Below, one piece after another: positions 30,101 to 64,000 of a stretch of DNA of 64,000 nucleotides. The notes below the pieces were generated by a model that had not been told where the DNA came from, made no database searches, and worked only from the letters and a program-made list of their open reading frames with translations. How positions within the stretch are numbered: position 1 is the stretch's first letter; the number at the start of each line of letters is the position of its first letter. The stretch covers positions 62,001-126,000 of the forward strand of contig MCFE01000182.1 of assembly GCA_002104905.1 (NCBI GenBank), written 5' to 3'. The DNA comes from Basidiobolus meristosporus CBS 931.73. Lineage: Eukaryota; Fungi; Basidiobolomycota. The position numbers and the translations under genes were made by a program.

Positions 30101-31796
30101 ACTTGACTATACTGAGACCTTTGCACCGGTAGCCAAGTTTAATTCCATCAGATTAATATTGGCTATTGCAGCCAAATATAAGTTTTTTATTCATTAAATG
30201 GATGTAAAAACTGCATTTTTGAATGGAGAACTTGATCAGGACATGTATATGGACCAGCCTGATGGGTTTGTTGACCAAGATAACCCCCATTTGGTCTGCA
30301 AGCTTAAAAAGTCACTATATGGTCTCAAACAATCACCAAGAGCCTGGAATTGCAAGATAGATTCTTATTTGGAATCTTTGAGTTTCAAACAAAGTAATGC
30401 TGACTATAGTATATACTATAAGCCAGATAGAGCAAATCCAGTTCTATTAGCTCTATATGTGGATGATCTTATTACAGCCGCCAATAACCTAGAAACATTG
30501 GAAGAAACTAAATCCAGCCTATCTAAGGAGTTCAAGATGTCTGATTTAGGAGAACTTAGTTACTACTTAGGGATTAAGTTCTCCATAGACAGAAGTACCC
30601 AGACTATCACCCTAAGTCAATCCAAGTATATTCAAGATATACTAAAGAAGTACCAAATGGAAGACTGTAAACCGGCAGCTACCCCAATGGAGACAAACCT
30701 TAACTTGGTCAAAACTCAACCAAATCAAGAGAGCTTGGTGCCATCTGAAAGCCCTGACTTTCATTATCAATATATGGTTGGCAGTCTGATGTATATCATG
30801 CTTGGAACACATCCAGATATCTCATATTCAGTGGGAGTTGTCAGCCAACATAATCAGAATTATGGATCTAATCATATTGCAGCAGTTAAGTGGATTTTTA
30901 GATACCTAAAAGGAACTGCTGATATTTGCTTAAGATACACTTATAAGGACTCAGAACAAGATCTTGTGGGATACTCTGATGCAGATTGGGGAAGAAATTT
31001 AGAAGACAGACAATCCACTACAGGATACACCTTTCTTTACTGTAAAGGAGCAATTTCATGGAATTCAAGAAAGCAACCAACCGTAGCACTTTCCACCACA
31101 GAGGCAGAGTATATGGCAGCCTGTGAAGCTACAAAAGAGGCAATGTGGCTAAGAAAGCTGTTTACAGATTTAGGCCTATGTCAAAAAACGCCTATTACTT
31201 TATTTCAAGATAATGAAGGATGTATACAATTAGGTAGAAATCCAACTATTCATGCTAGAACCAAGCACATAGATATTAGACATCATTTCATATGTGAAGC
31301 TATAGAGAATAACTTAGTTAGCTTAGTTTACTGTCCTACAGATGAAATGATTGCAGACATATTTACCAAACCATTAGCTAGAGACAAGTTTGAATATCTT
31401 AGGTCAAAATTAGGACTAGTCAGTATGAACATTTAGCTGAGTGGGAGTGTTGTAAAAGTTTGTATTTCCACCTAAATATTCATCTAACTTAGTCACTTAG
31501 ATCATTACCCTCAAATCCTAGAGAATACTGACCAAATTCCTTGTTGGGATTTACTTAGAATATTTTCACCAAAATACCTGGTACCCAGAACATGAAAATT
31601 CTCAAAGTTATCCAAATAGCCCCAAACTTTGCACACATGTTTTTGGGACCTTCCTCAACCTATTCTACGTGTTTGTAATGCTAAGACCAGGTAAAAGTAT
31701 AAATACTACTTTTACATTCAATAAATCATTAAGTGAAAACCACATAATCTACTTGTCCTCCCAATCACTTCCAATATCTCCAAGACTCTTACAACA
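27117..31796 (+). mobile_element. Full-length Ty1/copia family B element (4680 bp), inactivated
   Basis: 349-bp LTRs at 27117-27465 and 31448-31796, with 10 mismatches by hand count. PBS GGTTATGAGCCC. Domains: gag (KLDGSNYQVW), CNYCKRKGH knuckle, protease WYIDSGAS, GAG-pre-integrase HRRFGH...CEAC, integrase, RT (YVDD) and RNase H. Stops at 28028, 29991 and 30195, plus frameshifts. Confidence 0.96.
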
Positions 31797-34019: not shown

Positions 34020-37000
34020 ATGAGTGAAGAAAAGCCAAGTAACAAAACGCTTGGCGTGAAGAAAGCGCCGAAGTTCGAGTTACCCAAGGCGCCCGTGCCG
34101 CCGGATTCCGAGACGCCCAATGGGGAGAGGGGAAGGGAGAGAGTGTTCGGCATAGAGGAAGCGCCGACGTTCTTCCCAACGGCGGAGGAGTTCCTGGACC
34201 CCTACGAATATATCGGACATATCCGACCGGTGGCGGAGAAGTATGGCATGTGCAAAATCATTCCGCCTGCGTCATGGTCGCCGCCGTTCTCTCTGGATAG
34301 TGAGGTAAATTTTTTGGCCCTGTTTGTTTTGTTTCCCATAGTCAACATATCCCCACCGCCAAACCACTTCCCTCACCCAACGCGTGCCCGTAGGCCGCTT
34401 GCCTTCCCTTGAATCGAAGCTCGCACGCGCTCTCTTTTCTCACCAACCCCCCCCTGATATGGGATCTGTCGCTAGTTACGCCAAGGCTTGAACTGACCTT
34501 TCAATCTAGACGTTTCACTTTAGTACAAAAGACAATCGAGGGATTCCTAAGCAGACTGCCGCCGTGGCTGACGAAGAATATATCCAAGAACTATGTAAAT
34601 TCCATTCGAAACAAGGACAACCAATCCACAAACTCCCCCAATTAGACCACAAACCGGTCGATCTACTGATACTGAAGAACGAGGTGGCACTTCGCGGTGG
34701 GTTTCAGAACGTTAGTAGCCCCTGCTTGACACTTTTGGTATGGACGCAACGAAATAACCCCTCTCTATCTCTGCTTTCCGCACCTCAGGTTACGGTGGAA
34801 AAAAAATGGGCGGAGATCGGACGCACCATGAACTACTCCAGAAAGACCTGCACCTCCCTGTCGAACTCCCTCAAAACCATCTACTCCAGATTCGTGCTGC
34901 CTTTCGAACTCCACATGTCGACGTCCACTCGGGCTGACAAGGAGCCCAGATTGGCCTACGACGACGTTGACGACGAGAGCGAGCTGTCGAGCGCGGGGCC
35001 CCTCTTCGATAGCGAGTCCGACGACGGCCACGGGGATAGAAGTCTCCCTACGCCGGCCCCCCGCTGAAAAAGAGAAAGACCAAGAAAGAGTCCGGTATTA
35101 GGCGCATGTTGCCATGAGTTTTGCTTGACCTGAACCAAACTAAACGCGCATCGTGTAGACACCGAGTCCTCATTCCCCTCCTCCCCCGTCACCCCCACAC
35201 CAGCCCAGAATGGATTCTCGAAACCTCCGAAAGCGCAATCCTCCAAGTCAGACCCTAGCTCGATCGTAGGTACCCAGCGCACCCCGCCAGAACGAACCTC
35301 CCCTAACACCATTCTCGAATCTAGGCTTGCGAGATCTGCCGGAAGGATCAGAACGAGGAGGCGCTGTTGCTGTGCGACGGGTGCGACCGAGGCTACCATA
35401 TGTACTGTCTCAGTCCACCGCTGAAGGTGGTCCCAAAGACCGACTGGTTTTGCCCCAACTGCATAGCGCAAGTGGATAGCATCACGAGTGAGGTCCATGC
35501 CCGGTACAGTCTGCAACTATTTCAGAAGAAAGCCCAGAAGTTCAAAGAGGAGATCTTCTCCTCCATGCGGACCGGGGACTCCTCCAAAGCGGTCACCGAG
35601 GACCTAACGGAGGAGTTGTTTTGGAAGCTGGTGGATGCTGGCTACGATGACCTGGACGTTGAGTGCGGCTCGGACCTGTCCTCGGCGCTATACGGAAGGT
35701 AAAGTACGAACTTGGTTGCCCTTCTCCGCCTCGAGAAGCCCGTGCTGACCATCCTCTTTAGCGGGTTTCCCACCATCGAGCGCAACCCAAGGGAAAAGTA
35801 CTCCCTGGACAAATGGAATCCAAACATCCTTCCTACACTGCCCGATTGCTTGTTCTCCTCCATCGATACCCATGTCCCCGAGCTTGTGGTGCCGCGGTTG
35901 AACGTGGGCATGTGCTTCTCGTCCTTTAGCTGGCGCTACGAGCCCTACTACGCCTACGGGATAGACTTTCTACATTGGGGGGACAGCAAGACGTGGTATT
36001 GTGTTCCGGCTTCGGACGCTCGGAGATTCGAGGAGGTGGTGCGTGAAGTTGTCCCTGACCTGTCCACGCAGGAGCCCGAATTCCCACTCCGACTGGCTAC
36101 GATGGTCTCTCCCGAGACGCTCAAGAGCCATGGAATCAAGGTCACCGCGGTCAATCAACGGGCGGGCCAGCTGGTGGTCACCTTCCCACAGGCGTGTCAT
36201 GCCGAGTTCTGTCATGGGGTAGGTTGGACTGTTTGTAGCGGGAAGGGCCCTTTTTTACCTAACCAACACGCATGTTAATGTTGATGTAGTTTAACTTCGG
36301 AGAGAACGTGAACTTCGCGCTGAGCGACTGGCCGCAGCATGTGCTCCAGTATTTGAACCGCTCGAGGGCGCTCAGGAAAGAGCCGGCCTTCTCGTACGAT
36401 GGGCTGATGGTGGCACTGGCCTCCAACGAACCGAGCATCAAGACGGCAGTGTGGTACGTGTCCGGATCAAACTTGGGTGTCTTGTCGGGTGTGGCTAACC
36501 ATATTTGGCGCATGTAGGCTACACGCACCGTTGAAAGAGGTGGTTGACCAGGAAATCGCCAATAGAAATGCCCTTCGGAGCCGGTGCCCGGATATGAAGG
36601 AAGAGGTGGACCCGGGGTTGCCGGTCACCAGGTGTAGTCATTGCAAAGAGTTGAATCGTCTGTCGACACTCAGTTGCTCATGCACAATCAAGGTGACTTG
36701 CCCCGCTCACGGGGAACACGTATCCTTTTTCGCGACCAAGGAAGTTGTCGAGCAGTGCAATGTCAATGTCAACGTCAATGTTCTTAACCATTTTCCCAGC
36801 TCTGTGAATGTCCGCCAGACGCGAGAGTGCTTCGGATCCGACACTCCGATGAAGAGCTTCAGCGCATGGTCAGCGAGGTGACCGACAAGGCCGAGCTCCC
36901 CTCGAGATGGGTTCGAAAATTCCACGAGTCGGTGGCGAGTCTGAAGCTACCCTCGCTCAACACACTGAAGCATCTGCTGAACGACGCGGAGAAGATCCCC

Positions 37001-38428
37001 GTCTTCATCAACGAAGCGGCGTTCCTGAAGATCTTTGTGAATCGGGCGAACGAGTGGGTGGAGAAAGCCAACTCTTTCTTGGGAAAGAAGCATCGTCGCG
37101 GGTCCACCCGACCGAACATCCCCTCCGAAGAACATGTGCGAGGCCTCTTCACCGAGGTTCTGAAGCTGAACTTTCATTCGCCCGAGATCCTGTCCCTGGA
37201 GCAGCTACTCCAAGTGATCGACACCTTCAAGGCCGAAGCGCATGCGGCACTCGCCGACCCCGGAATGACGATCGATCAGCTCAGGCAACTCTATCAGTCG
37301 GGCATCTCGGTTAATGTCCAAATGGAGGAGCTTCCAAAGCTAATGAATTGTATTCGGACGATGGAATGGAATGAACTGGCATCATGCGACAGCCCAACTG
37401 ATCTTTCCAAAGTGGAGCAGATGCTCCATATGGCCAGTGACTACGACATTGACGTTGACGACAGCTCTCTGAAGCGGCTGAAGCATCTGCAGGCCCGGGG
37501 ACAGCGCTGGAAACAATCAGCGGTGGCCATTCTAGACCAAGATATGATCACCTCCGCCGAGCTGGAGGCCTTGATTGAGTTGGCCCGGGAAAGCCCGCAT
37601 GTGCCGTCACTGTTGAGTCAAGCGGAGTCTCTTCTTTCCAAGGTGCAGGATTGGAGCGTCAGCGCTAGGGCACTGCTGGGCCGAGGGGAGAACCCGGATA
37701 TTCTGCAAAGACCCACGGTCGATGAGCTTCACCAAATGCTGGGCAGGCTGAAAGAGATCCCAAACAAGCCGGTCGAGGTGTATATCTTGGAGCATGAGCA
37801 AGAGCTCACTGATAAATGGTGCGCCGCCGTGAAAAAGGCCTTTCTCAAAGTCCAGACGCCGAAAGGTTGGGACGAGGTTCTGGAGGTGCTTCAGCAGAAT
37901 GTGTCCAAATGCTCGGCGGTCGAAAGCCAAGGGGAAGCCTATTGCCTTTGCCGGTCCGCCGATTCCGGTTTCATGATCGAGTGTGACAGTTGCCATGAAT
38001 GGTACCATGGCCATTGCGTGAAGCTCACTCGCAAGGATGCCAAATCCCAACGTAGCTACATCTGCCCGATATGCAACCCGGCGGTGGGGATCTCTCGGGT
38101 CTTCAAGCGCCCCACGCTGGAGGATCTGTACAAACTGATCCGTGAGAGCAGCCAATTCAAGTTCATCCCCCGGGAGCGAGAGATCCTTCTCTCCCTGACC
38201 GACGATGCCTCCTCGCTACGCTTGCAGATTCGCCGGTTCCTCGCCACATTGAACACCACCCCCTCGCCCAGCATCACCCAGATCCAGCATTACCTTCGGA
38301 AAGTCGAGGGAATGATGATCCACCTACCAGCGGAGACCGCTCAACTGCGGCAGATCCAATCCGCCTACGAGCTACCCATCAACCATGAGCTGGACAGCGC
38401 ATCTGAGGAGTCGGGGTATTCTTCGTGA
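34020..38428 (+). CDS. KDM5: KDM5/JARID1-family protein (JmjN, ARID, PHD, JmjC, zf-C5HC2, PLU-1, PHD), multi-exon; JmjC probably catalytically dead; apparent +1 frameshift near 35020-35065
   Basis: JmjN EAPTFFPTAEEFLDP...GMCKIIPP; ARID PQLDHKPVDL...KKWAEIG; PHD ACEICRK...LLCDGCDRGYHMYCL; JmjC GMCFSSFSWRYE...HWGDSKTWY...TFPQACH; second PHD YCLCR...MIECDSCHEWYHGHC. Introns have GT-AG ends. Confidence 0.93.
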
Positions 38429-43392: not shown

Positions 43393-44418
43393 TTAGCGGC
43401 AGCTGATCTCTTGGGGGTGGTATGGCGGAGGGCAGAGCTCAGGGTCAGGAGTTGCGTACATTGGTGGCGAGCTTGAAAGCTCATGCTGTGCGTGGGATTG
43501 TACGACAAACGGGATGTCAATGTAGAAATACCAGCGTTTCTGGAAGGTGTCCATCAGCCTAACTTTGGCTACTATTGCATGTGAAATTGTGATGATGTCG
43601 GAGCTGCAGTCGCAATGGGTGCTCTTCGGCGTGGTTATGGTGGCTTGGAGCTCCATTTTTTCGCTATGCGACTTGAAGCCCAAGGCTTTCCGACTGATCT
43701 TCTCGCTGTCACAGATTGGCTGGTTGCGCGGGCCCACGTAATTGGCGAGCTCGACAACACTCAGGTTGATCTCGGTAATGCGAAACTCCTTGCTCTTGGA
43801 GAAAAATTTGAAGTTCACTGGGATGGTCTCGCCTGGAGTGTATCTCCCTTTTTCCAGCGACATGTTGTAAAACAAGGACTTGGCCCAAATGCCAAGGCTG
43901 TTAGTGACGCATCTTTCATCCGCCTTCGGGGAGAGTGCTCTCTGGATCCGAAGTGTGCGGCGACCTTTGATGTTCCAAAGTAGTGGTCTTTCAATCACCG
44001 CGGTCAGTTTGTAAGATACACGGCAATTCGGGACATCCGCGGAGTCCGGGAGGTCTCCTTTGAGCGCAAATTCGAACGGAAACTGATGAGTCTTTACATC
44101 AAGGAGGGGCTCGTTGTCGCTGGGCTTCCACAGAACCCAAGATTGGTTCACGGTGGTTATCTTCTCCCAGATTTCTGCGACATGCAAGTTAGCGAGTGCG
44201 GGACTTGAAATCGATTCCAAAATAGAGGATGCAGTACCTTTGATTTTATGATTCTCCACCTTTCCTTCCAGCTGCAGGGTTACGCACTTGGCATTCAAAG
44301 GCTTGGTAGGCGTAAACGTCACGAAGCCACTCACGATCTTCCCCACGGATTCATCAGGAGTCCCATGCAAGACCACCGGATCCTCGACCAAGTGGATGCA
44401 CACCGTGCTGTTGTACAT
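43393..44418 (-). CDS. Alpha-arrestin (arrestin N and C domains, PY motifs), intronless
   Basis: HQFPFEFALKGDLPDS, VSYKLTAVIERP, YNMSLEKGRYTPGETIPVNF and C-terminal SPPMY / PPPY motifs. Start placed approximately at MYNSTV; the track ORF extends to 44568. Confidence 0.88.
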   Translation of the reverse strand: MYNSTVCIHLVEDPVVLHGTPDESVGKIVSGFVTFTPTKPLNAKCVTLQLEGKVENHKIKGTASSILESISSPALANLHVAEIWEKITTVNQSWVLWKPSDNEPLLDVKTHQFPFEFALKGDLPDSADVPNCRVSYKLTAVIERPLLWNIKGRRTLRIQRALSPKADERCVTNSLGIWAKSLFYNMSLEKGRYTPGETIPVNFKFFSKSKEFRITEINLSVVELANYVGPRNQPICDSEKISRKALGFKSHSEKMELQATITTPKSTHCDCSSDIITISHAIVAKVRLMDTFQKRWYFYIDIPFVVQSHAQHELSSSPPMYATPDPELCPPPYHPQEISCR

Positions 44419-44838
44419 TATATAAGAGTAGGCGGGGCGGAAGTTGAGGGTCCGTTGCGCGCATTGGTGTTTATATAGCGGAGAGCAATGCCCCGAATAG
44501 CAAATCCCCATTGATGACCCAGCTTTTGGCTCATCGAATTCCACAGCAGGACAAATTAAGAGATTCATTCAGCTTGAAAAACTAGTATATTTTTGGACAC
44601 CAATCACTCCCTATTTTGGGCCGCAAGGTCCCATCCAATTCGTGGATTCTGACCATCGCATTTATCCTAGTTTAGCAGGAGGGAGTTGTCAGCAACAATG
44701 CTCTCCTTAGACCTTAGATGCTGGACTGGTATCTGTTGCCGTTCCCGTTCCGTTCCGTTTCCGTAGTTTGTAAATTATGTGCATCATTCGTATTTAGACT
44801 ATGGATGCCAATGTGGTTTATTTGGAAATATGCGGTAA

Positions 44839-47140: not shown

Positions 47141-47411
47141 ACCAGGGCTGGTGGAAATCACAAATACACATCGAGTTCGCTTTCTCTTGCCAGGATTCAC
47201 AGCAGTTGGAAGAAAATATCCCCGACATTTTTATTGTATAGCTTTTTTAACCGTAACTCTTACTTCTGTCACTTGTCCTAGTTCTTAGCTATGTTTAGTT
47301 CAATCTTTCATTTACTCGATAAATATTCCCTTCCAGGAACACCAGTTCACTTCTTATGCACATGCACATCTGGCTAGTACCGTTGCTTTATTGTCTCTTT
47401 ATCTCGATGGG

Positions 47412-48140: not shown

Positions 48141-48583
48141 TTCCGCTCGTGACACACCTCCGCCTTTAAGACGTAGAACTGGTGAAGTCTCTTCTTGGTG
48201 GGGGAGTGCCAAAGCCAAGCCTAAGCTTGCGTTTTTGTGACACAAGAGGTGACGGGACCTGATAAGTTCAAGGGCTAGAGGAAAGGAAGGAGTGATTAAA
48301 AATCATGGCACGTTACGTAGCAAAGATGGAATACCTTGGTTATGGTGCATGCTGTTGGAACGGCCAAGTGATTAGAGGTCAACAAGAATTTATGCTTCTC
48401 CAGACCAATGTGACGTGTATGAAGGTTCAATATCCACCAGATGATTCACTTTGATTAATCCAATTGATTCCCACACAATTTAGCCCTCTAGCCCCTAAAC
48501 CTATAGTTATTCCAAAATTGATCACTGTTTTCATAGAAATTCCGGTAGCAATCAATCGCGAACGCTTCCAGGCTTGAGCAAAC

Positions 48584-50987: not shown

Positions 50988-51399
50988 TCTGTTTCTCACG
51001 GAATCACCCAATAAACATCACCTTATCTGTATCCAATGGAAACCATGAATCTCAGTAATATTCGGTCTTTGGAGCATATCTCATACAGCATTGTGTGGGC
51101 CCTTTTCCACACCCCCCCACAGGCAGATTAATTTGGCACCTGCAATGAAATGCTACTAATTAAATCTTGACCCCAATTCCAGCACCAAGTCCTCAACGTA
51201 TTGATGAGCAAACTCACTCCTATACTTCCCCCCGTAGCCTTAAAACCAACTCATGCAACCATTCCCGATCCCCTTCCTAGCTAGCATGATTGAATAGGGG
51301 CTATGCAGTGGATATCCAACGTTAAATACTCCAAGGATGCTGAGAACTCTAGCCAGCTACCACCTGTCTCCTCCAGTTTTCCATTAGATTCCCCCAAAG

Positions 51400-51651
51400 A
51401 TGTCTATTTTATACACACTCCTGTTCCTGGTTTTGTGCCTTGCGGTTGTCCTGTCTCACCCAATCAGCGTGTATGACTACACCTACGAGCCTATTGCCAT
51501 TGACCAAGCAGACAAGTTGAAATTCCAGTCGAATGGTGAACAAATCCAGAATACCTGGAGAAGCAGCGAGGTGTTTGAGTTCGACGAGAAGTTGGATGCG
51601 GAGGATTTCGATGATACCGACTTCTATGGCGAGGACGCGGAGTATTACTAG
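51400..51651 (+). CDS. Small secreted acidic protein (83 aa), unknown family
   Basis: Clear signal peptide MSILYTLLFLVLCLAVVLS and an Asp/Glu/Tyr-rich tail. Confidence 0.65.
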   Translation: MSILYTLLFLVLCLAVVLSHPISVYDYTYEPIAIDQADKLKFQSNGEQIQNTWRSSEVFEFDEKLDAEDFDDTDFYGEDAEYY

Positions 51652-51931
51652 ACATGTAAAGATGGACCAGATTAACCCCTAGATATCCTCCTGATTCCCC
51701 TTTTGCTTAGACAAGAGATACAGTATAAAATGCGTCTTTACCATCCACCCAGTTGTTTATATAGTACTTTGTTATTTCTGAGCCGAATAAACCAAGCCAA
51801 TAATCTATTTTGATTTAGTTTAGTGTCCTCCTCTTCTTCGCCCGCCTCTCTGAAATGCGTTTACCATCCTCCTAGTAGTGTATGGAGTACTCCATTTACT
51901 AACCGAAGTAATCTTCATAACTTATCTTTAT

Positions 51932-52270
51932 TTATTCTTTTTTACCCTCCTCTTCCTCTTCCGAGTCCGCCTCTCCACCCTCCTCATCGTCTCCTTCCCA
52001 TTCCTCTTCCTCTTCCCCTTCTCCGTTATCATCATCATTGTGTTCTTCTGCCTCAGGTTGAGCAGATTTAAAGCTATGACGACTTCCATTGTAGTTATTA
52101 CCGGAGGTTGATCGTTTTGCTATCCAGGTGGTACTTTTCGGATAGGAGCCCACGGAACCATTGGATGGGTTTTCACCTTCACCTACACTCGCACCGTAAT
52201 GCTCGTAAGTAGGGGCGGCACTCACAGTAAGCACATAGAAAAGGGACAATAGGGGAATCAATCTCATGGC
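51932..52270 (-). CDS. Small secreted protein with a poly-acidic C-terminal tract, unknown family; 3' end may be spliced
   Basis: Signal-like MRLIPLLSLFYVLTVSA, a KR dibasic site (IAKRS), then EAEEHNDDDNGEGEEEEEWEGDDEE. Confidence 0.6.
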   Translation of the reverse strand, partial: AMRLIPLLSLFYVLTVSAAPTYEHYGASVGEGENPSNGSVGSYPKSTTWIAKRSTSGNNYNGSRHSFKSAQPEAEEHNDDDNGEGEEEEEWEGDDEEGGEADSEEEEEGKKE

Positions 52271-52522
52271 AGGCAATCGCTTGGTATACTTCATGTTCAA
52301 AGAGGCCCGGTCTTTTTATATGCGATCTCGTCTGGCAATTCCAACCTGTATGCATAGCGGCTGAACCCGAAATCCCCGATGTCTTTGCAGTAAGCAATAC
52401 ACAGCATTATTCAGTTCAATTCATTTATTGATTCTCTAAAGATGCCCATAAATGTGGTATCAACTTACAATCTATGTAATTCCGGTGATACATACTGAAA
52501 AAAAATCCCCATCACCAGTGAT

Positions 52523-53134
52523 CTATGGGAATGCGTAAACGCCTGGAGTACAGGAGGTGCGAGTAATGTCAACGACGTTGAGGCGGTTTCCGTACTGGTT
52601 GTCGATCTCGACATAGTACTTCTCAAGACCGACCATGAAGTCAATTTGATGGTTGCTGAGTCCCCAACCTTGATCATCGACACGGACACATCCGTTGTGG
52701 ATCTGACCATCGGGCAATTGAACTCCCTTAAGTTGCTTCACCATCAAGGTAGTACCGCGGGGAATGTTGTTGGCTGCAACACTGACAAAAGGTACGAGTG
52801 CGTTGTCCCAGGCACCCAAGCCATAAGGATAGAGGGTCTTGTTAAGGTAAGAGAAGCAGCTATAGCCACCATCGCAGCTACATTGAAGATTGATCACATC
52901 ACCATTGTTCAAGATAGCAGTTCCTTCCATGCGGGCAGCTTCGGCGAATTCGTGGCTGACTGTAGCTAGAGTCTCACCGGAGCAGGTTTGGATTTCGATG
53001 TCCTGGGGGCCAGAGAAATCACTCTCTTCCGAGATCCAGTAGTAAGTCAAATCAACTCTTCTGGCCAAAGCCAAGGACTGGAAACAGGCCAAGGCGAGAA
53101 GGGTGAACATAAAAAGCTTCGAGGCGGTAGACAT
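52523..53134 (-). CDS. Secreted 3D-domain (MltA-like double-psi beta-barrel) protein, copy 1, 203 aa
   Basis: Signal peptide MSTASKLFMFTLLALACFQSLALA, TYYW, MEGT, LVPFVSVAANNIPRGT, VDDQGWGLSNHQIDFMVG, six Cys, no introns. The track ORF starts 23 codons earlier at 53203. Confidence 0.8.
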   Translation of the reverse strand: MSTASKLFMFTLLALACFQSLALARRVDLTYYWISEESDFSGPQDIEIQTCSGETLATVSHEFAEAARMEGTAILNNGDVINLQCSCDGGYSCFSYLNKTLYPYGLGAWDNALVPFVSVAANNIPRGTTLMVKQLKGVQLPDGQIHNGCVRVDDQGWGLSNHQIDFMVGLEKYYVEIDNQYGNRLNVVDITRTSCTPGVYAFP

Positions 53135-54055
53135 TTTGTTGATATCAGTAGGCTGATGATATTCAGGTATTCCACTAGTCCGTTTATATAGTTTCTCTTC
53201 CAACGAATTCGGCTATCACCATATTACTTTCTAGGTCCTTGTGGCCAAGTTTGTCAATAGACTACTACGCTTATGGAGAGTGGATATCAGCCGCCTAAAA
53301 GCTATGGATAGCATTTACAAGTATTGAAACACATCTTCTGGTGTTTCGCCCAGCTCATCCCACTGACCAATCCGATAAATTTCCCACATCCCACTGGCCA
53401 ATCCAGTAAATTTCCTGCATTCTTCATGCCATTCCAATTCGGATGTTGGATCCAGTGCCTGGGATCCAGTACCTGGAAAACAAATCAAGCTAGCCCATAT
53501 ATGGTTGCCTCATCCCATGTCCCTTGACACTAGTGCTGGCAGGTCAATCCTATTGCCCCAGTGAAGCCACACCCGTCCACTTGACAGTGGATTCCTGGAT
53601 CTAAACGGATTGTCAAAAGGGAATATCGAGAGTGATCAAGAATCTGTCAGCTCATGATTGGAGCTGCTGCGATAAAGGCTTTGTCAGACTGCAATTGGAA
53701 ACAGCTGCCTGGCTTCTTGATTCGACTCCTTGCCCATCTCAATCCCGATACTACCCAGTATGTCCCGGCAAAGACCTGGTTACCTTCCATATCCACTAGG
53801 CTTCATACCGACCCTTGATAACAAGTTGGGAATACTTGCGACTACTGTTTGAGTATCTTATCTAGATTTACAAGCCCGCAATGCTTTGTAGCCACTCACA
53901 CCGGCTCCACTGTTGTTGCTCTCCTTTTGGAGCCCTTTAGCTGGTTGGCGTATGTTGGATATTCGTTGATTTTATTTTCAGTTTGAACTAGCCCAGTAGT
54001 CCTTGTGGTAGTGGTAAATATCGAGACATTGGATTTCCCAGCATTCTCTGATCTA

Positions 54056-54701
54056 TCAAAAGGTCACACTCAATGCAATCCTTGCTAGCTCTGGAGCCTT
54101 GTAGACACCAGGCACACATTCTTCATGAGCGATATCAATGTAGTTCAAGAGATTTTCGTATTTGTTGTCCATCTGGACATAGTACTTCTTGATGCCAACC
54201 ATGAAGTCAATTTGGTTGTCACCAAAGCTCCAGCCTTGATCGTCGACACGGACGCATCCGTTGTGGATCTGGCCGTTCGGCAGCTTGATTCCCTTGAGCT
54301 GCTCGACCATCAAGGGTGGTGCCATAGGAGATGTCGTTGGCGGCAACACTGACAAAAGGAACAAGAACATTGTGCTTATTACCCTGACCGTAGGGGTAGA
54401 GCTTCTCGTCGATGAAAGAGAAGCAGCTGTAGCCACCATTGCAGTCGCACTGAAGGTTGATCACCTTACCGTTGCCCAGGATAGCAGTACCTTCCATACG
54501 AGCAGACGCGGCAAATTGACGGTTCACAGTAGCGAGAACCTCTCCAGAGCAGCTACGAAGTTGGATATTCTTTGGGCCAGCGAAGTCGCTCTCTTCTGAG
54601 ACCCAGTAGTAAGTCATCTTTACCTCTTTGGCAAATACACTGGCGCTGAATAGGGTTAAACCCAGGGTGACGGCAAGTAAGAATCTGAAAGTAGAGAGCA
54701 T
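54056..54701 (-). pseudogene. Secreted 3D-domain protein, copy 2, with a +1 frameshift (pseudogene or assembly error)
   Basis: CAAGGGTGG at ~54311-54319 versus CAAGGTGG in copies 3 and 4. ORFs 54219-54701 and 54056-54439 join into a full-length protein if one G is removed. Confidence 0.75.
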
Positions 54702-55291
54702 CTTTGGAGTTGTGTTTGTTCTCGACTATTGTTTGATGAATATCATGGACTTCCATATCTTAGTTATAACACAGCTCAAGCAGGGTCACGCATCAACGGC
54801 ATGACATCAACGGCATGGCACCAACGTGGTCGTTACCCTTTCATAAAGACACACTCCAATATACTTCGATCTGTAGGATGAATGCCGTATCAGATCATGA
54901 ACGTGCAAACATCTACCACAGCGGGAACACTATTAGAATACTATCATCGGTTCTTGAACAAAAGACCAGTGTAGTCAGGTAGTAATTTAAGTGATGTCCT
55001 GCAAGTTGATTGATCAAAAGCGCTTCATTGAGTTGCGGCTAGATAGCCATATCATTAAAGCCTCTGGTATAGTATTCGAGAGTGCTAGCTACCTTTCCTT
55101 TTTTTAGACTGATTAGCCTTTATACGGACTCACTGAAGTGTCCTGGGTGATTGGCCCTTGAGGGATATTTATTAATTTTTGTTTGTTCTTTTTACCTGAG
55201 CCTCAATCACAGTCTGGACTACCGTGTTAAAAATATTATCCCATCCCTTTTTCAACCTATGGATTTTCTAGCAAAATGATCTAACATCGCT

Positions 55292-56065
55292 CTATAAGCC
55301 TCCTAACCCTAACCCTGGTATTTCTGAGTTTGATAATGTCGAAGGAACTAGCTTTACAAAGAGCTCCCGATAACTGACAACCCAAGTAATACTTGGCACG
55401 CCAAAAGAAGTGGTCTTGTTCTTATTTTGGAAGGATTGTAATATACCTCGGATATTCAGGTATGATAACGTTAAGGCTAAGCAGTGATTCCTACACGATT
55501 CTTGGGTGAATTGTATTCCCGTTTTTATCCCCTGGATGGCGATCGGGATCTGGTAACTTGAAAGATTTCTAGGTAGCGTGATGGGTACTACCAAGTATTG
55601 AAACATATCTTCTGGTGTTTCGCCCAGCTCATCCCACTGACCAATCCGATAAATTTCCCACATCCCACTGGCCAATCCAGTAAATTTCCTGCATTCTTCA
55701 TGCCATTCCAATTCGGATGTTGGATCCAGTGCCTGGGATCCAGTACCTGGAAAACAAATCAAGCTAGCCCATATATGGTTGCCTCATCCCATGTCCCTTG
55801 ACACTAGTGCTGGCAGGTCAATCCTATTGCCCCAGTGAAGCCACACCCGTCCACTTGACAGTGGATTCCTGGATCTAAACGGATTGTCAAAAGGGAATAT
55901 CGAGAGTGATCAGGAGTCTGTCAGCTCATGATTGAAAGCTGCTGCGATAAAGGCTTTGTCAGACTGCAATTGGAAACAGCTCCCTGGCTTCTTGATTCGA
56001 CTCCTTGCCCATCTCAATCCCGATACTACCCAGTATGTCCCGGCAAAGACCTGGTTACCTTCCAT
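55292..56065 (-). pseudogene. Decayed reading frame in the inter-copy spacer of the 3D array
   Basis: A 258-codon frame from ATG 56065 to the stop at 55292 has only two internal TGA codons. No family recognised. Confidence 0.35.
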
Positions 56066-56443
56066 ATCCACTAGGCTTCATACAGATCCTCGATAGCAAG
56101 CTGGCAGCTCCTGCAGCTACTACAATGCCTAGCTTGAACATTCACGTTATCCTTTCGCAATGGCTCTAATTTGATGGCCTACGAATCTGCAATACTCTAC
56201 AGCCGCCGCACCGGCTCCATTTCCTTTGCTTTGCTACCCTTCTTTGTTAGTTGGCTGGTGAATATTGCCTCATTGCCAAAGTCAGATGCATACTTCTGAT
56301 TCATTGATTTTATTTTCTATTTGAACTAGCCCAGTAGTCTTTGTGGTGGCACTAAGTATCGAGACATTGGAATTCCCAGCATTCTCTGATCTATCAAAAG
56401 GTCACACTCAATGCAATCCTTGCTTGCTCCGGAGCAAGACAGC

Positions 56444-57061
56444 TCAGTCCCGAGGAGTCTTGTACACACCAGGCGTACACTCCTCGCGAGTGATATCGAC
56501 GTAGTTGAAGAGGTTTCCGTATTTGTTGTCCATCTCGACATAGTACTTCTTGATGCCAACCATGAAGTCGATTTGGTTGTCACCAAAGCTCCAGCCTTGG
56601 TCGTCGACACGGACGCATCCGTTGTGGATCTGGCCGTTCGGCAGCTTGATTCCCTTGAGCTGCTCGACCATCAAGGTGGTGCCATAGGAGATGTCGTTGG
56701 CGGCAACACTGACAAAAGGAACAAGAGCGTTGTCCTTCTCGCCCAGACCGAAGGGGTAGAGCTTCTCATTGATGAAAGAGAAGCAGCTGTAACCACCATT
56801 GCAGTCGCACTGAAGATTGATCACCTTACCGTTGCCCAGAATAGCGGTACCTTCCATGCGAGCAGCCGAGGCAAATTGGCGACTCACGGTAGCGAGAACC
56901 TCTCCAGAGCAACTACGGAGGTGGACATCCTTCGGACCAGAGAAATCACTCTCCTCTGAGATCCAGTAGTAAGTCATCTTCACCTTCTTGGCAAATACGC
57001 TGGCACCGAGCATGGTCACACCGAGGGTGGCGACAAGTAAGAATCTGAAAGTAGAGAGCAT
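56444..57061 (-). CDS. Secreted 3D-domain protein, copy 3, 205 aa
   Basis: Signal peptide MLSTFRFLLVATLGVTMLGASVFA, VSVAANDISYGT and VDDQGWSFGDNQIDFMVG. Confidence 0.85.
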   Translation of the reverse strand: MLSTFRFLLVATLGVTMLGASVFAKKVKMTYYWISEESDFSGPKDVHLRSCSGEVLATVSRQFASAARMEGTAILGNGKVINLQCDCNGGYSCFSFINEKLYPFGLGEKDNALVPFVSVAANDISYGTTLMVEQLKGIKLPNGQIHNGCVRVDDQGWSFGDNQIDFMVGIKKYYVEMDNKYGNLFNYVDITREECTPGVYKTPRD

Positions 57062-59256
57062 CTTTGGAGTTGTGTTTGTTCACGACTGTTGTTTGATGAA
57101 GGCCATAGAGCATCAAAGGCTCAATATATATACACCACCGGTGGGCCCCCAGCAGGGAGAATTGGAAGTCACCATGGCCCATGGCCCGGTCACTTTCCCC
57201 ATAAGCTCAAATTTCTTTAAACATCAATTTTTTAAGCGTAGTTGTCAGTAGGATTCCATGGATGTACTGTGGATAAACATTGGTAAGGTGCATGGGAAGA
57301 GGCTGGGATATAGTAGGAAATCGGCAGGAGGCCATTAACAATCCATGGAATTGGTACAGTATTCTTGACTGTATAAATGCCAAAAGTTGGCAGGATTGGC
57401 TGCACCAATCCGATTTTTTTCCAATCATCTATGATTTGCCATCAACCGGTCTAATAGGTAATTGGCTTCTATTAATCTGGAACGTGTTAGTGGCATGACA
57501 CTAACGTGGTCAATAACCTTCCAGAAAGATAAACTGAAGTATACTTTGATCTGGAATGATGCGAACACTATTGATAGGTTGATACTATAGTAGTAGAAAT
57601 ATGTATATATTGCTGATCAAACAACGTTAGAATAGTGTCAATAGTACATGAGCAAAAGACCTGTGAAATTCGGGAGTTAGTAAAGTAGTTTATCTCGCAA
57701 AGAGGTTCTCATAAACACTTGAATTGCCATGTCATTGAAATCCCCTGTATAGTATTTGGCAACGCATTTCTTCAAGGTACCACATTTAATCTAGATAGAG
57801 GATCTCGATAAATTGCTGTTATTAGACTGATTAGCCTTTATACGAACTCACCTGGATAACCTGAACGATTGGCCCTCGAAGAATATTTATCCTTTTTTGT
57901 TTATTCTTTTTTGCCTGAACTTTAGTCACAGCCTGGACTACCGTTTTAAAAATACCATCCCATCCCTTTTTCAATATATGGATCTTCTAGCTAAATGGGC
58001 TTGACATCACTCTATAAGCCTGTTAACCCTAACCCTGATGTTTCAGACTTGGATCGTGTTCAAGAAACCAAGCTGATAAAGGATTCCGGTTGACCGTCAA
58101 CCCATACAGTACTTGACTCACCAAACAGAAGTGGTTTTCGCTCTAATTTGATAGGAGTACTACCTACATTAGAATTTTAGGAACGGTGACAACAAAGCTA
58201 AGCAGTGATTCCGATACGATCTTTGAAGAATTGTATTCCCGTTTTTATCGCAGTTGCTTTAAAATCACTATCGCTATAATTGACTCAATCCGATATTTCA
58301 TCATAATTTTTGCTATAATGACATTTGTTATTGTATATATTGTCGCAATTGGGATCTGTCAACTTTAAAAATATTTAGATAGCGTGATGGGTACTACCAA
58401 GTATTGAAACATATCTTCTGGTGTTTCGCCCAGCTCATCCAACTGACCAATCCGGTAAATTTCCCATATCCCATATCCCAATACCCAATCCAGTAAATTT
58501 CCTGCATTCTTCATGCCATTCCAATTCGGATGTTGGATCCAGTGCCTAGGATCCAGTACCTGGAAACCAGATCAAGCTAGCCCATATATGGTTGCCTCAT
58601 CCCATGTCCCTTGACACTAGTGCTGGCAGGTCAATCCTATTGCCCCAGTGAAGCCACACCCGTCCACTTGACAGTGGATTCCTGGATCTAAACGGATTGT
58701 CAAAAGGGAGTATCGAGAGTGATCAGGAATCTGTCAGCTCATGATTGGAAGCTGCTGCGATAAAGGCTTTGTCAGACTGCAATTGGAAACAGCTCCCTGG
58801 CTTCTTGATTCGACTCCTTGCCCATCTCAATCCCGATACTACCCAGTATGTCCCGGCAAAGACCTGGTTACCTTCCATATCCACTAGGCTTCGTACAGAT
58901 CCTCGATAGCAAGCTGGCAGCTCCTGCAGCTACTACAATGCCTAGCTTGAACATTCACGTTATCCTTTCGCAATGGCTCTAATTTGATGGCCTACGAATC
59001 TGCAATACTCTACAGCCGCCGCACCGGCTCCATTTCCTTTGCTTTGCTACCCTTCTTTGTTAGTTGGCTGGTGAATATTGCCTCATTGCCAAAGTCAGAT
59101 GCATACTTCTGATTCATTGATTTTATTTTCTATTTGAACTAGCCCAGTAGTCTTTGTGGTGGCACTAAGTATCGAGACATTGGAATTCCCAGCATTCTCT
59201 GATCTATCAAAAGGTCACACTCAATGCAATCCTTGCTTGCTCCGGAGCAAGACAGC

Positions 59257-59874
59257 TCAGTCCCGAGGAGTCTTGTACACACCAGGCGTACACTCCTCGC
59301 GAGTGATATCGACGTAGTTGAAGAGGTTTCCGTATTTGTTGTCCATCTCGACATAGTACTTCTTGATGCCAACCATGAAGTCGATTTGGTTGTCACCAAA
59401 GCTCCAGCCTTGGTCGTCGACACGGACGCATCCGTTGTGGATCTGGCCGTTCGGCAGCTTGATTCCCTTGAGCTGCTCGACCATCAAGGTGGTGCCATAG
59501 GAGATGTCGTTGGCGGCAACACTGACGAAAGGAACAAGAGCGTTGTCCTTCTCGCCCAAACCGAAGGGGTAGAGCTTCTCATTGATGAAAGAGAAGCAGC
59601 TGTAGCCACCATTGCAGTCGCACTGAAGGTTGATCACCTTACCGTTGCCCAGAATAGCGGTACCTTCCATGCGAGCAGCCGAGGCAAATTGGCGACTCAC
59701 GGTAGCGAGAACCTCTCCAGAGCAACTACGGAGGTGGACATCCTTCGGACCAGAGAAATCACTCTCCTCTGAGATCCAGTAGTAAGTCATCTTCACCTTC
59801 TTGGCAAATACGCTGGCACCGAGCATGGTCACACCGAGGGTGGCGACAAGTAAGAATCTGAAAGTAGAGAGCAT
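59257..59874 (-). CDS. Secreted 3D-domain protein, copy 4, 205 aa, identical in protein sequence to copy 3
   Basis: Offset 2813 bp from copy 3, with four synonymous differences. Confidence 0.85.
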   Translation of the reverse strand: MLSTFRFLLVATLGVTMLGASVFAKKVKMTYYWISEESDFSGPKDVHLRSCSGEVLATVSRQFASAARMEGTAILGNGKVINLQCDCNGGYSCFSFINEKLYPFGLGEKDNALVPFVSVAANDISYGTTLMVEQLKGIKLPNGQIHNGCVRVDDQGWSFGDNQIDFMVGIKKYYVEMDNKYGNLFNYVDITREECTPGVYKTPRD

Positions 59875-60552
59875 CTTTGGAGTTGTGTTTGTTCACGACT
59901 GCTGTTTGATGAAGACCATAGAGCGTCCAAGGCTCGATATATATACAACACCGGTGGGCCCCCAGCTGGGGGAATTGGAAGTCACCATGGCCCATGGCCC
60001 GGTCACTTTCCCCATAAGCTCAAATTTCTTTAAACATCAATTTTTTAAGCGTAGTTGTCAGTAGGATTCCATGGATGTACTGTGGGTAAACATTGGTAAG
60101 ATGCATGGGACGAGGCTGGGATATAGTAGGAAATCGGCAGGAGGCCATTAACAATCCATGGAATTGGTACAGTATTCTTGACTGTATAAATGCCAAAAGT
60201 TGGCAGGATTGGCTGCACCAATCCGATTTTTTTCCAATCATCTATGATTTGCCATCAACCGGTCTAATGGGTAATTCGTATCCATTGATCTGGAGCGCAA
60301 TAATGCCACTAATTTGGATGTATTCTTTTTCGATCAATATTCTGGTACACTCTTATTCTCGTATATAGCGATTAGGGATGATATATTGTTTGAGGAAATA
60401 CGTAACGTACTTATCAAATTAAACATGAAAACGGGTATTATGATTAAGACGGTCCAGCTGTGAAACCCAATTGTCCTGAATTAATAGCTCGAAAAAAAAG
60501 CCCATTTTTATCTCATCGTAACAATTGCGAAACTCTCATCCCATTCTACACG

Positions 60553-60914
60553 ATGGCTAGAGGACAGCAAAAGATTCAAGCAAGGTAATTTTTTTCCATC
60601 ATCTCTTAATGGCACTAGTTTTGGAGGTTTACAAAGATGATTTACCTACCGTATACAAAGAGAGAAGGCTCAGAAATTAGCTGAAGCTAAAGCTGGCGGT
60701 AAATCTCAAATCGGTGCCCGCGCTGCTGGTTTAAAGGCCATCTGCCAAATCTGCAAGGTATCGCTTACTTCAAAAGACTCGATTTGCTTCAAATGAATTT
60801 AACGCCAACATTTCTAAGAACCCTTGTGCCAACTACAAAACTCTTGTTCAACATATGGGTGCCAAACATCCCAAAGAACCTGTCCCTAGCGAAGAATCTC
60901 TTGGCTTACAATAA
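60553..60914 (+). CDS. Small 4F5/ZNF706-like zinc-finger protein, three exons (absent from the ORF track)
   Basis: MARGQQKIQAR / ERKAQKLAEAKAGGKSQIGARAAGLKAICQICK / NPCANYKTLVQHMGAKHPKEPVPSEESLGLQ*, joined across two GT-AG introns. Confidence 0.85.
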
Positions 60915-61866
60915 TCTCTTTTGCCAACCCAGGGAAGTAAAGCTACGGATGACATAGATTGTATAGCCACCCCAACAACAGCCACTTCCATTAATACGTT
61001 AGCTCAATAAAGTCTATAATACACCATCATTTGCCTATTATTGGCTTGTGCATAGTTCTGTAGCACAGTACTCTTAGTTATGGTTAGGCTGAACAGCGGA
61101 GTTGAAGTGAAACTGAACAGTGTAAATATACTCCGCAATATTATTTATAGTCCCAAAAGGAATGATTTCAACTTGGTACGAAAATATGTATTGTTATCGA
61201 TCTAATCATTGACACCTGGCAAATATAAAGATATATGACTTCGCACACATAGACACAAGTAAGCCTCACACGACGAGTTCTCTGGCATGCACTATGAATG
61301 TAAATACAGCAGTTTCTAGCCACATTTCGGTCATTAAGATGCCTTTCAAATGTTCACTGTTCAATAAGATTTCAAAGCTTCGAGAGAATGTAGTATATTC
61401 CTGTCCTTTTACTTGCTTGCTCCGTATACAACCAGTTCTGACTACTCGAAAAATCCGCAGGTTGCGCCTCACTTGAAAGTACGAATACATGTCGGTGATG
61501 GGTGGAGCGGTGGCTATTGCTACACGTGAATTGTGGCTTTTCAGTAACTGGCAAAAAACTGTCGATGGAGAATACGCAGAGTACATGTTGGCATTGGGGG
61601 TACGGGCAGTTTGGCTCTTCAATATACGGTAAAAACCTTGAAGGACTCTTTATCATAAAAGGATGCCGAAGAAACACTTAAATTCTCTGCTTTAACAGCT
61701 TCAATCATATGAAATGGATGAATGGAGAATCAAGATCCCGAGTTGCGATGGCTTTTAAACAGTACTTGTTCTGAGGCGGCATAAAATAATCATTTATTTC
61801 AGTATATTTGGTAAATATTCTATCAACCAGTCAGGAATTCAACGATGTCAATAATGATATTCGTCT

Positions 61867-63873
61867 CTAATATTTATATGCGGAGCCACTGTGATCGCCA
61901 CCCTTACCACTTCCTTTGCCTCCATAGTCGCCTCCCTCACCACCTCCCTTGCCCCCATAGTCGCCACCCTCACCGCCTCCCTTGCCTCCATAGTCACCAC
62001 CTTCGCCGCCTCCTTTACCACCAGCGTAGTCCTTTACATCGTAGCTACCACCAGACCCACCGCCACCGTACTTGGCGCCTTCACCACCACCCTTGCCTCC
62101 ATAGTCGCCACCTTCACCACCTCCACCATACTTGCCACCCTCACCGCCTCCATTGCCACCGTGGTCGCCACCTTCACCACCTCCCTTGCCACCGTAGTCG
62201 CCACCAGATCCACCACCACCATACTTGCCACCCTCACCGCCTCCCTTACCACCGTAGTCGCCACCAGATCCACCACCACCATATTTACCACCTTCGCCGC
62301 CTCCTTTACCACCTGCGTAATCCTTTACATCATAGCTACCACCAGACCCACCACCACCGTACTTTCCGCCCTCACCGCCTCCCTTGCCACCGTAGTCGCC
62401 ACCTTCGCCACCTTCGCCACCACCCTTGCCTCCATAGTTGCCGCCTTCACCGCCGCCACCATACTTGCCACCCTCACCGCCTCCCTTGCCTCCATAGTCG
62501 CCACCTTCACCACCACCCTTGCCTCCATAGTTGCCGCCTTCACCGCCGCCACCATACTTGCCACCCTCACCGCCTCCCTTGCCGCCATGGTCACCACCAT
62601 AGTTGCCGCCTTCGCCACCTCCCTTGCCTCCACCAGATCCACCACCACCATATTTACCACCTTCGCCGCCTCCTTTACCACCTGCGTAATCCTTTACATC
62701 ATAGCTACCACCAGACCCACCACCACCGTACTTTCCGCCCTCACCGCCTCCCTTGCCGCCGTGGCCACCACCATAGTTACCACCTTCGCCGCCTCCCTTG
62801 CCACCGTAGTCGCCACCTTCGCCACCACTCTTGCCTCCATAGTTGCCGCCTTCACCGCCGCCACCATACTTGCCACCCTCACCGCCACCCTTGCCGCCGT
62901 GGCCACCACCATAGTTGCCACCTTCGCCGCCACCCTTGCCTCCACCAGATCCACCTCCACCATATTTACCACCTTCGCCACCGGATCCGCCGCCACCATA
63001 TTTACCACCCTCGCCACCACCATTACCCCCAGAGTAATCCTTTGAATCATAGCCACCGCCAGATCCGCCTCCTCCTTTGCCTCCGTAGTCGCCACCCTCA
63101 CCGCCACCACCATGCTTGCCGCCTTCTCCACCTCCCTTGCCTCCATAGTCGCCACCAGATCCACTTCCACCATATTTGCCACCTTCGCCGCCGCCTTTAC
63201 CGCCGTAATCGCCACCGGATCCGCCACCACCATGTTTACCACCCTCGCCACCACCATTTCCCGCAGAGTAATTCTTTGAATCATAGCTACTGCCAGATCC
63301 ACCTCCTCCCTTGCCTCCATAGTCGCCACCAGATCCATCGCCGCCGTATTTGCTGCCTTCGCCACCACCACCATACTTGCCACCCTCACCACCTCCGCTG
63401 CCTCCATAGTCACCACCTGCACCGCCACCACCATATTTCCCGCCTTCGCCACCACCCTTGCCACCTGCGTAATCCTTTACATCATATCCCCCACCAGATC
63501 CACCACCGCCGTGTTTTCCGCCCTCACCACCTCCCTTGCCTCCATAGTCACCAGCTTCGCCGCCACCCTTACCGCCGTAGTCGCCACCAGATCCACCGCC
63601 GCCATACTTGCCACCTTCACCACCACCCTTGCCACCTTCACCACCACCGCCATATTTGCCGCCTTCGCCACCACCACCATACTTGCCACCTTCACCACCA
63701 CCATTGCCTCCATGGTTGCCGCTTTCACCACCACCTGCATTGCCGCCATAAGAGACTGATTTCCCCTCACCACCCGAATAATCCTTTACATCATATCCTC
63801 GCTCCAAAACAGTTGCATTAGCCATAGCCAACGCAGAGATAGCGAAGAGGATATTAGCGGAGGAGAATTTCAT
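61867..63873 (-). CDS. Secreted Gly-rich repetitive protein, 668 aa
   Basis: Signal peptide MKFSSANILFAISALAMANA, then GGDYGGKGGGEGGKYGGGG-type repeats punctuated by seven YD(V/S)K(D/N)Y motifs. The track ORF starts 35 codons earlier at 63978. Confidence 0.9.
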   Translation of the reverse strand: MKFSSANILFAISALAMANATVLERGYDVKDYSGGEGKSVSYGGNAGGGESGNHGGNGGGEGGKYGGGGEGGKYGGGGEGGKGGGEGGKYGGGGSGGDYGGKGGGEAGDYGGKGGGEGGKHGGGGSGGGYDVKDYAGGKGGGEGGKYGGGGAGGDYGGSGGGEGGKYGGGGEGSKYGGDGSGGDYGGKGGGGSGSSYDSKNYSAGNGGGEGGKHGGGGSGGDYGGKGGGEGGKYGGSGSGGDYGGKGGGEGGKHGGGGEGGDYGGKGGGGSGGGYDSKDYSGGNGGGEGGKYGGGGSGGEGGKYGGGGSGGGKGGGEGGNYGGGHGGKGGGEGGKYGGGGEGGNYGGKSGGEGGDYGGKGGGEGGNYGGGHGGKGGGEGGKYGGGGSGGSYDVKDYAGGKGGGEGGKYGGGGSGGGKGGGEGGNYGGDHGGKGGGEGGKYGGGGEGGNYGGKGGGEGGDYGGKGGGEGGKYGGGGEGGNYGGKGGGEGGEGGDYGGKGGGEGGKYGGGGSGGSYDVKDYAGGKGGGEGGKYGGGGSGGDYGGKGGGEGGKYGGGGSGGDYGGKGGGEGGDHGGNGGGEGGKYGGGGEGGDYGGKGGGEGAKYGGGGSGGSYDVKDYAGGKGGGEGGDYGGKGGGEGGDYGGKGGGEGGDYGGKGSGKGGDHSGSAYKY

Positions 63874-64000
63874 ATTGATACTTGAGTCCGATAGATGAGA
63901 CGATTTTTTTCTGATCCAACCGACTCCATTCCGGAGGGATTTATAGGTTCTTGGAAGGTCTGAGAAGGAGTCGATCAAGGGGTCAGAGGGTTGTTAGATT

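Follow-up and report, generated by a model that had tools for sequence, protein, structure and literature searches.

A tandem array of secreted, MltA-like genes in the fungus Basidiobolus meristosporus: predicted fold, ancient bacterial kinship and putative glycan cleavage

The genome of the fungus Basidiobolus meristosporus CBS 931.73 harbours a tandem array of four paralogous genes, all encoded on the minus strand, between 52.5 and 59.9 kb of the window considered here (64,000 nucleotides, positions 62,001 to 126,000 of contig MCFE01000182.1; Table 1). The encoded proteins are most likely secreted lytic-transglycosylase-type cleavers of beta-1,4 N-acetylhexosamine glycans, as judged from their predicted fold, the correspondence of their conserved residues to those of the bacterial enzyme MltA, and their phylogenetic position. 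Copies 1, 3, and 4 each consist of a single uninterrupted open reading frame (ORF), whereas the adjoining Gpi16 gene, with 577 aa in 2405 nt, is interrupted by introns, in agreement with a preliminary description of this DNA that had called the array genes intronless. The same description had counted four same-strand ORFs of ~205 aa, which is correct for the number, strand, and position of the paralogues, except that copy 2 is frameshifted in the window. The products of copies 3 and 4 are identical, their genes differing by four synonymous and no nonsynonymous substitutions, while copy 1 shares 66% identity with them. The dN/dS values relative to copy 3 are 0.15 for copy 1 and 0.25 for copy 2, showing that every copy has evolved as a coding gene under purifying selection. 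The spacer segments lying between the units are 70-96% identical to one another. Taken together, the copies appear to have multiplied through tandem duplication and unequal crossing-over, an amplification that may serve gene dosage.

The array proteins begin with a hydrophobic leader ending in SVFA/KK, and the folded part of an AlphaFold2 (AF2) model starts at residue 25; the leaders, judged from these two features, are predicted to be eukaryotic-type signal peptides, and those of copies 2-4 contain no lipobox. This is consistent with the secretion and tandem amplification proposed earlier. The six conserved cysteines noted at that time are found in copies 2-4, but copy 1 has seven, one of which lies within the leader. 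The GC content of the array genes is 50-52%.

Table 1. Features of the array and its surroundings (window coordinates).
Feature	Position	Strand	Description
Copy 1 (P0006)	52523..53134	-	intronless, 203 aa, predicted signal peptide and mini-MltA domain
Copy 2	54056..54701	-	like gene, frame broken in the window; intact 214-aa form (P0002) on the alternative contig
Copy 3 (P0001)	56444..57061	-	intronless, 205 aa
Copy 4	59257..59874	-	205 aa, protein identical to copy 3
Tandem unit	56444..59256		2813 bp (gene plus ~2.2-kb spacer), absent from the alternative contig L083
Repeated spacer segments, families D3-D6	53265..54097		further copies: 55539-56435, 58345-59248; without annotated genes
Small ORF	51400..51651	+	signal-peptide-like N-terminus, no Pfam match
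Small ORF	51932..52300	-	signal-peptide-like N-terminus, no Pfam match
Long repetitive ORF	61867..63978	-	Gly/Tyr-rich, no Pfam match
Reverse transcriptase	30198..31436		copia-type
KDM5-like gene	36827..38428		
Arrestin gene	43393..44568		

Direct database searches with the array proteins returned no relationship to characterized families. Neither copy 1 nor copy 3 matched Pfam 3D (PF06725), or any other Pfam family, at E values of 10 or below, the Pfam model of the MltA insert domain (PF03562) matched neither the window proteins nor any of the 86 family members scanned, and a profile of the eukaryotic family found no match among PDB sequences. Because these searches were empty, the link to the 3D domain and MltA was drawn through other family members, a profile of the bacterial branch, hhalign, and structure. 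An AF2 model built from 36 sequences reached a mean pLDDT of 90.5, and in a Foldseek search against the PDB, as suggested in the preliminary description, its best 14 matches came without exception from the MltA family of lytic transglycosylases (MltA from various species, LtgG, and a putative transglycosylase; E values of 5e-5 and up). Among Swiss-Prot models, the best match was again MltA (E 6e-7). Alignment of the family with E. coli MltA by hhalign gave an E value of 0.0012, and the bacterial-branch profile retrieved YuiC and three MltA homologues from the PDB at E values of 1e-3 to 8e-3. Within the E-value limits of the respective searches, Pfam 3D was matched by five members in a set of 36 and by 13 in a set of 50 (best 7e-16), and relatives exceeded its 23.8-bit cut-off in several cases (P0020, 31 bits; P0052, 24.1; P0101, 49.9; P0149, 58.6). 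Homology to Pfam 3D thus follows by transitivity, since relatives of the array proteins at E values of 1e-20 to 1e-37 pass the curated threshold that the window proteins themselves do not reach.

In the predicted structure, the array protein is a compact whole MltA, in which a double-psi barrel is interrupted by a reduced insert domain. The barrel is formed by an N-terminal strand (TYYW) together with the C-terminal 3D region, and the insert domain occupies residues ~35-104 and includes the MEGT motif. The 3D/MltA-like double-psi barrel anticipated for these proteins is accordingly borne out by structural search, hhalign, and the Pfam 3D matches among relatives. The likeness had, however, been placed in a C-terminal 3D motif, and although this motif is present, such a description is too narrow, as the similarity spans the whole of MltA, including the insert domain in reduced form.

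At the residue level, hhalign pairs VSVAAND-ISYGTTL of the family with VASDRSIIPPGTTL of E. coli MltA, and VRVDDQGWSFGDNQIDF with VALDVGGAIKGQHFDI; the upstream VSVAAND segment, previously proposed to match MltA, aligns with VASDRS. With MltA numbering checked against the K-12 sequence, the paired residues are N122/D261, D154/D297, and D165/D308, and the interval of 11 residues between D154 and D165 equals that between D297 and D308. Of the three MltA aspartates, two are hence retained, while the position of D261 is taken by N122 with D123 adjacent, as had been read from the sequence before. Across the 36-member alignment, E70, G71, H146, G148, C149, D154, G156, and D165 are invariant, and T30, Y32, W33, M69, T72, and N122 nearly so. 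At the level of motifs, MTYYW resembles the MltA segment FTGYY, which holds T99, and MEGT...GNG..INL is similar to VQGSG...GDG..LNF, the segment with V161 and S164. The likely candidate catalytic set of copy 3 comprises T30, M69-E70-G71-T72, N122/D123, D154, and D165. In MltA, D308 (D162 in YuiC) provides the catalytic carboxylate and owes its orientation to T99 (T91 in YuiC), D297 (D151 in YuiC) binds the -2 sugar at its N-acetyl nitrogen, and contacts to the -1 and -2 sugars are made by the carbonyl of V161 and by S164 (PMC4499186). YuiC has been shown to yield a 1,6-anhydro-GlcNAc-GlcNAc product from penta-GlcNAc and to degrade peptidoglycan in zymograms (PMC4499186). As far as sequence comparison goes, the array proteins keep equivalents of all of these residues except D261.

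A word-indexed protein search recovered 44 relatives and an exhaustive search 864 clusters at E values up to 1e-3, the best 150 of which provided the names of members given here. Eukaryote-type members, recognizable by the motifs HNGCVRVDD-GWSFG and SVA-ND, were found in B. meristosporus, B. ranarum, Conidiobolus, Dimargaris, and Tieghemiomyces, in many Mucorales, Endogonales, Rhizophagus, and Geosiphon, and in the chytrids Nowakowskiella, Lobulomyces, Clydaea, Geranomyces, and Phlyctochytrium, so that the presence of similar proteins in Mucoromycota stated in the preliminary description was correct. No member from Dikarya occurs among the named matches of these best 150 of 864 clusters. Bacterial-type members carry HDGC-RADD-GG and SVAVD together with lipoprotein signals. 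When bacterial genomes were scanned with the eukaryotic alignment and the pattern HNGCVRVD, no relative was detected, and the bacterial-type alignment identified 364 loci in species-representative bacterial genomes. Nearly all of the best 80 of these belong to Myxococcota (Polyangia, Haliangium, Kofleriaceae, Nannocystaceae, and Sandaracinaceae), accompanied by Bradymonadales (Lujinxingia and Microvenator) and a Bdellovibrio, a list biased towards Myxococcota because the search pattern HDGC[VLF][RIV]A[DG]D favours their motif.

Maximum-likelihood analysis of 86 sequences gave an unrooted tree in which the bacterial rows occupy one side and all 56 eukaryote-type rows form one group with moderate support (87/88), within which the 12 Basidiobolus sequences are nested as a single clade (100/99) together with chytrids, Mucoromycota, and Dimargaritales. 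The sister of the eukaryote-type group consists of lipoproteins of Myxococcota, Bradymonadales, and Bdellovibrio, thereby providing the bacterial sister group sought in the phylogenetic check. This topology fits one old bacterial acquisition followed by descent and lineage-specific duplication; as the tree is unrooted, the bacteria-to-eukaryote direction is inferred from the MltA/3D superfamily at large, whose range is bacterial. The Basidiobolus paralogues represent a late lineage-specific expansion and not a recent import, and the bacterial derivation suggested in the preliminary description stands as an ancient event but not as a recent transfer into Basidiobolus itself. At the base of the eukaryote-type group lies P0045, a lipobox protein encoded on a 70%-GC metagenome contig (L082, gene 1054-1674), which already carries the "eukaryotic" motif set (SVASND and GWSFG) and may be close to the donor lineage. 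A role for P0045 as a separate donor to Basidiobolus was rejected, as its placement as sister in a FastTree analysis had only 55% support and a more careful tree moved it to the basal position. In addition, one protein from the springtail Allacma fusca (P0071, on a 99-kb contig) and one EukProt entry (P0014) fall within the eukaryote-type group, as a result of additional transfers or of contamination.

A second version of the locus is present in the same assembly. The 13.4-kb contig MCFE01001208.1 (L083) is 99.6% identical to window positions 47055-57481 and 98.8% identical to positions 58345-62770, but contains three array genes where the window has four, and the public protein set therefore counts array genes twice. 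Copy 2 is intact in this contig. In the window, one extra base at ~54312-54316 splits its ORF between "...SYGTT" and "MVEQLKG...", and the public gene model P0004 bridges the break with an invented intron, thereby losing 23 conserved residues (GNKHNVLVPFVSVAANDISYGTT). Only one short-read contig from a public DNA run of the same organism (X1) spans this site, and it has one base fewer there; since it also shows two A>G differences that are absent from L083, it may derive from an allele, a paralogue, or a chimeric unitig. Over the segment specific to the extra unit (57426-58409), the word depth in the contigs of run X1 is about half that of flanking single-copy DNA, a value that serves as a rough guide only, being derived from contigs. 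These contig data suggest two haplotypes, or assembly versions, with three and four units, L083 probably being the other haplotype of the region, and the frameshift of copy 2 would be either an assembly error or allele-specific.

The array is flanked by the spliced Gpi16 gene and by Rpb4, SERF-like, arrestin, and KDM5-like genes, and is a genuine fungal locus within an ordinary fungal chromosome. Two small ORFs adjoin it, one of which corresponds to an annotated 111-aa gene on the alternative contig with an acidic, Glu/Asp-rich tail. At the end of the window, a long ORF encodes a secreted, highly repetitive Gly/Tyr-rich protein with units of the type GGGEGGKYGGGGSGGDYGGK... and a signal-peptide-like start (MKFSSANILFAISALAMANA); this ORF causes the GC content of 0.59 and the strong GC skew observed there. 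Elsewhere, the GC content of the window ranges from 0.37 to 0.43 over positions 1-34000 and from 0.46 to 0.55 over positions 34001-60000, with a step at ~34 kb. The low-GC part contains the copia-type reverse transcriptase, and the KDM5-like and arrestin genes lie in the higher-GC part.

Catalysis, substrate, and biological role of the array proteins are what we infer from these observations, as follows. A secreted, disulfide-containing protein of ~180 aa, representing a compact MltA (CAZy GH102), would bind a glycan of beta-1,4-linked N-acetyl-hexosamine within the groove that separates the barrel from the insert domain, by analogy with MltA and YuiC. D165, oriented by T30, would act as the single acid/base, and attack of the C6 hydroxyl of the -1 sugar on C1 would cut the chain and leave a 1,6-anhydro end. 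The extracellular substrate would most likely be bacterial peptidoglycan, with chitin or chitosan as a close second, and the enzyme might help the fungus to feed on or hold off bacteria in its gut and dung habitat. The family would have passed from bacteria to eukaryotes long ago and subsequently multiplied in Basidiobolus. Such a scenario of a secreted mini-MltA cleaver, directed most probably at peptidoglycan, of old bacterial origin and expanded in Basidiobolus, is held here with moderate confidence. Peptidoglycan is favoured because all characterized kin act on this polymer and because of the bacteria-rich habitat, free secretion, and amplification of the proteins, although its assignment as the substrate is, in our judgement, evenly balanced.

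Several observations weigh against this scenario. The window proteins lack a direct match in Pfam 3D, Pfam MltA (PF03562), NCBIfam, and PDB sequences. The pairings of T30 and MEGT rest on motif likeness and the extent of the alignment rather than on residue-level superposition, and the equivalent of D261 is Asn throughout the eukaryotic branch. The loop following D154 reads GWSFG instead of GGAIKG as in MltA, and substrate contacts may therefore differ. Moreover, the domains fused to eukaryotic family members suit chitin as much as peptidoglycan.

This last point leads to the strongest alternative, in which the same fold and chemistry serve chitin or chitosan as the natural substrate, either in the wall of the fungus itself, while it grows and discharges spores, or in the walls and cuticles of other organisms, as a repurposed wall-remodelling enzyme. 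We consider this alternative possible but less probable than a peptidoglycan-directed function. Among eukaryote-type members, fusions to LysM occur in Mucorales (P0059 and P0074) and fusions to CE4 deacetylase domains in P0047 and P0182 (the latter from a chytrid and annotated "Carbohydrate esterase 4"), with weaker fusions to GH18 (P0062, 24.4 bits) and CBM19 (E 9e-4). In comparison, bacterial members are joined to N-acetylmuramoyl-L-alanine amidase/Amidase_2 (P0130), Peptidase M15 (P0143), VanY (P0101), and SH3b (P0149), which are peptidoglycan tools, as expected of predators. However, the numbers of fusions are small, LysM and CE4 serve both polymers and are found on peptidoglycan enzymes too, and the GH18 and CBM19 matches lie below or near their thresholds. 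As a separate observation, one long family member (alignment A5) contains a protein-kinase domain (E 9e-68) and may represent a receptor-like protein whose ectodomain is a mini-MltA.

Taxonomic distribution and ligand binding also bear on the choice between chitin and peptidoglycan. The named members from the best 150 of 864 clusters are confined to early fungi rich in chitin and chitosan, and the mycoparasite Dimargaris possesses several paralogues. The conversion of penta-GlcNAc to a 1,6-anhydro product by YuiC (PMC4499186) and the binding of chitohexaose by MltA (PDB 2pi8) likewise agree with a chitin-type ligand, and in the eukaryotic branch D261 has been replaced by N and aromatic residues (GWSFG) have appeared next to the active site. 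Against this, the GWSFG/ND motif set pre-exists in the high-GC bacterial protein P0045, all characterized relatives act on peptidoglycan, and an enzyme that is amplified, freely secreted, and not anchored to the wall suits an external target better. A more specific version, in which the eukaryotic branch would constitute a chitin-directed lytic transglycosylase derived from a predatory-bacterial peptidoglycan enzyme, making non-hydrolytic cuts to 1,6-anhydro-GlcNAc ends for wall remodelling or mycoparasitism, appears rather unlikely on the present comparative evidence.

Still less probable is a non-catalytic glycan binder or wall-loosener comparable to expansins, loosenins, cerato-platanins, and barwin-type proteins, acting as an adhesin, elicitor shield, or loosening factor. 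The structural match to the expansin/cerato-platanin barrels is far weaker than that to MltA, and equivalents of the catalytic Asp308 and the orienting Thr99 are present, D165 as aligned by hhalign and T30 as judged from its T-x-Y-Y motif and from how far the structural alignment extends. Finally, a recent horizontal transfer from gut bacteria to Basidiobolus, or bacterial contamination of the assembly, for which one might cite the many bacterial genes reported from Basidiobolus (PMC7466969), the intronless array genes, and bacterial homologues of 43-51% identity, is rejected as highly improbable, because the tree contradicts it and because the spliced eukaryotic flanking genes, a GC content well below the ~70% of the nearest bacterial contig, and leaders with eukaryotic signal peptides in place of lipoboxes speak against it.

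The 3D domain call itself is not new, since the name "3D domain-containing protein" is already attached in UniProt and AlphaFold DB to several members, among them the intact counterpart of copy 2; the ESM Atlas also places family members beside a Myxococcota 3D cluster. No study of the eukaryotic family was found in the literature on the 3D domain, MltA, GH102, or lytic transglycosylases in fungi, and the main text and supplements examined of an interkingdom-transfer survey of early-diverging fungi mention neither the array genes nor PF06725. The new elements are that the protein as a whole is recognized as a compact MltA with two domains, that it is sister to lipoproteins of predatory bacteria, that the first Asp and the active-site loop have changed in a branch-specific manner, and that the locus shows the details of copy number and frameshift described above. 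To our knowledge, MltA-type lytic transglycosylases have been treated as strictly bacterial wall enzymes. A compact secreted MltA, conserved among chytrids, Zoopagomycota, and Mucoromycota and maintained by purifying selection, would, if it cuts peptidoglycan, represent a fungal antibacterial or bacterivory tool with a bearing on fungus-bacterium interactions in gut and soil and on the endobacteria of Mucoromycota. If it cuts chitin, it would add a third chemistry of fungal chitin cleavage beside the GH18/19/20 hydrolases and lytic polysaccharide monooxygenases. Either outcome is directly testable, as the protein is only ~180 aa long and well modelled.

Among known systems, the expansins, loosenins, and cerato-platanins of fungi and plants are also double-psi barrels, but they lack an insert domain, conserve other residues, and show no sequence link to the array proteins. 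YuiC and related Sps (stationary phase survival) proteins of Firmicutes (PDB 4wjt and 4wlk) align over 95 residues and likewise have no insert domain, forming a domain-swapped dimer, whereas the array proteins keep a small one. E. coli MltA (GH102; PDB 2ae0 and 2pi8) provides the best structural match, as both are double-psi barrels interrupted by an insert domain and share the D297/D308 equivalents at a distance of 11 residues, a T99-type Thr in a T-x-Y-Y strand, and a (Q/E)G(S/T) motif in the insert. MltA is nevertheless much larger (~345 versus ~180 residues, the insert of the array proteins being much reduced) and is an outer-membrane lipoprotein with D261 and GGAIKG, in contrast to the soluble, secreted, probably disulfide-containing proteins with Asn and GWSFG that are encoded on a fungal chromosome and have no Pfam MltA or 3D match. 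The array proteins agree in length and layout with the compact, uncharacterized 3D-domain lipoproteins of Myxococcota, Bradymonadales, and Bdellovibrio (for example, P0020 and L002-L081), with which they share 35-45% identity over the mature protein (51% for P0045) and a C-x-C...C motif. These bacterial lipoproteins differ in carrying a lipobox, in keeping the first Asp (SVAVD) and GG after the D297 equivalent (HDGC-RADD-GG), in passing the Pfam 3D threshold, and in their frequent fusion to peptidoglycan amidase or peptidase modules.

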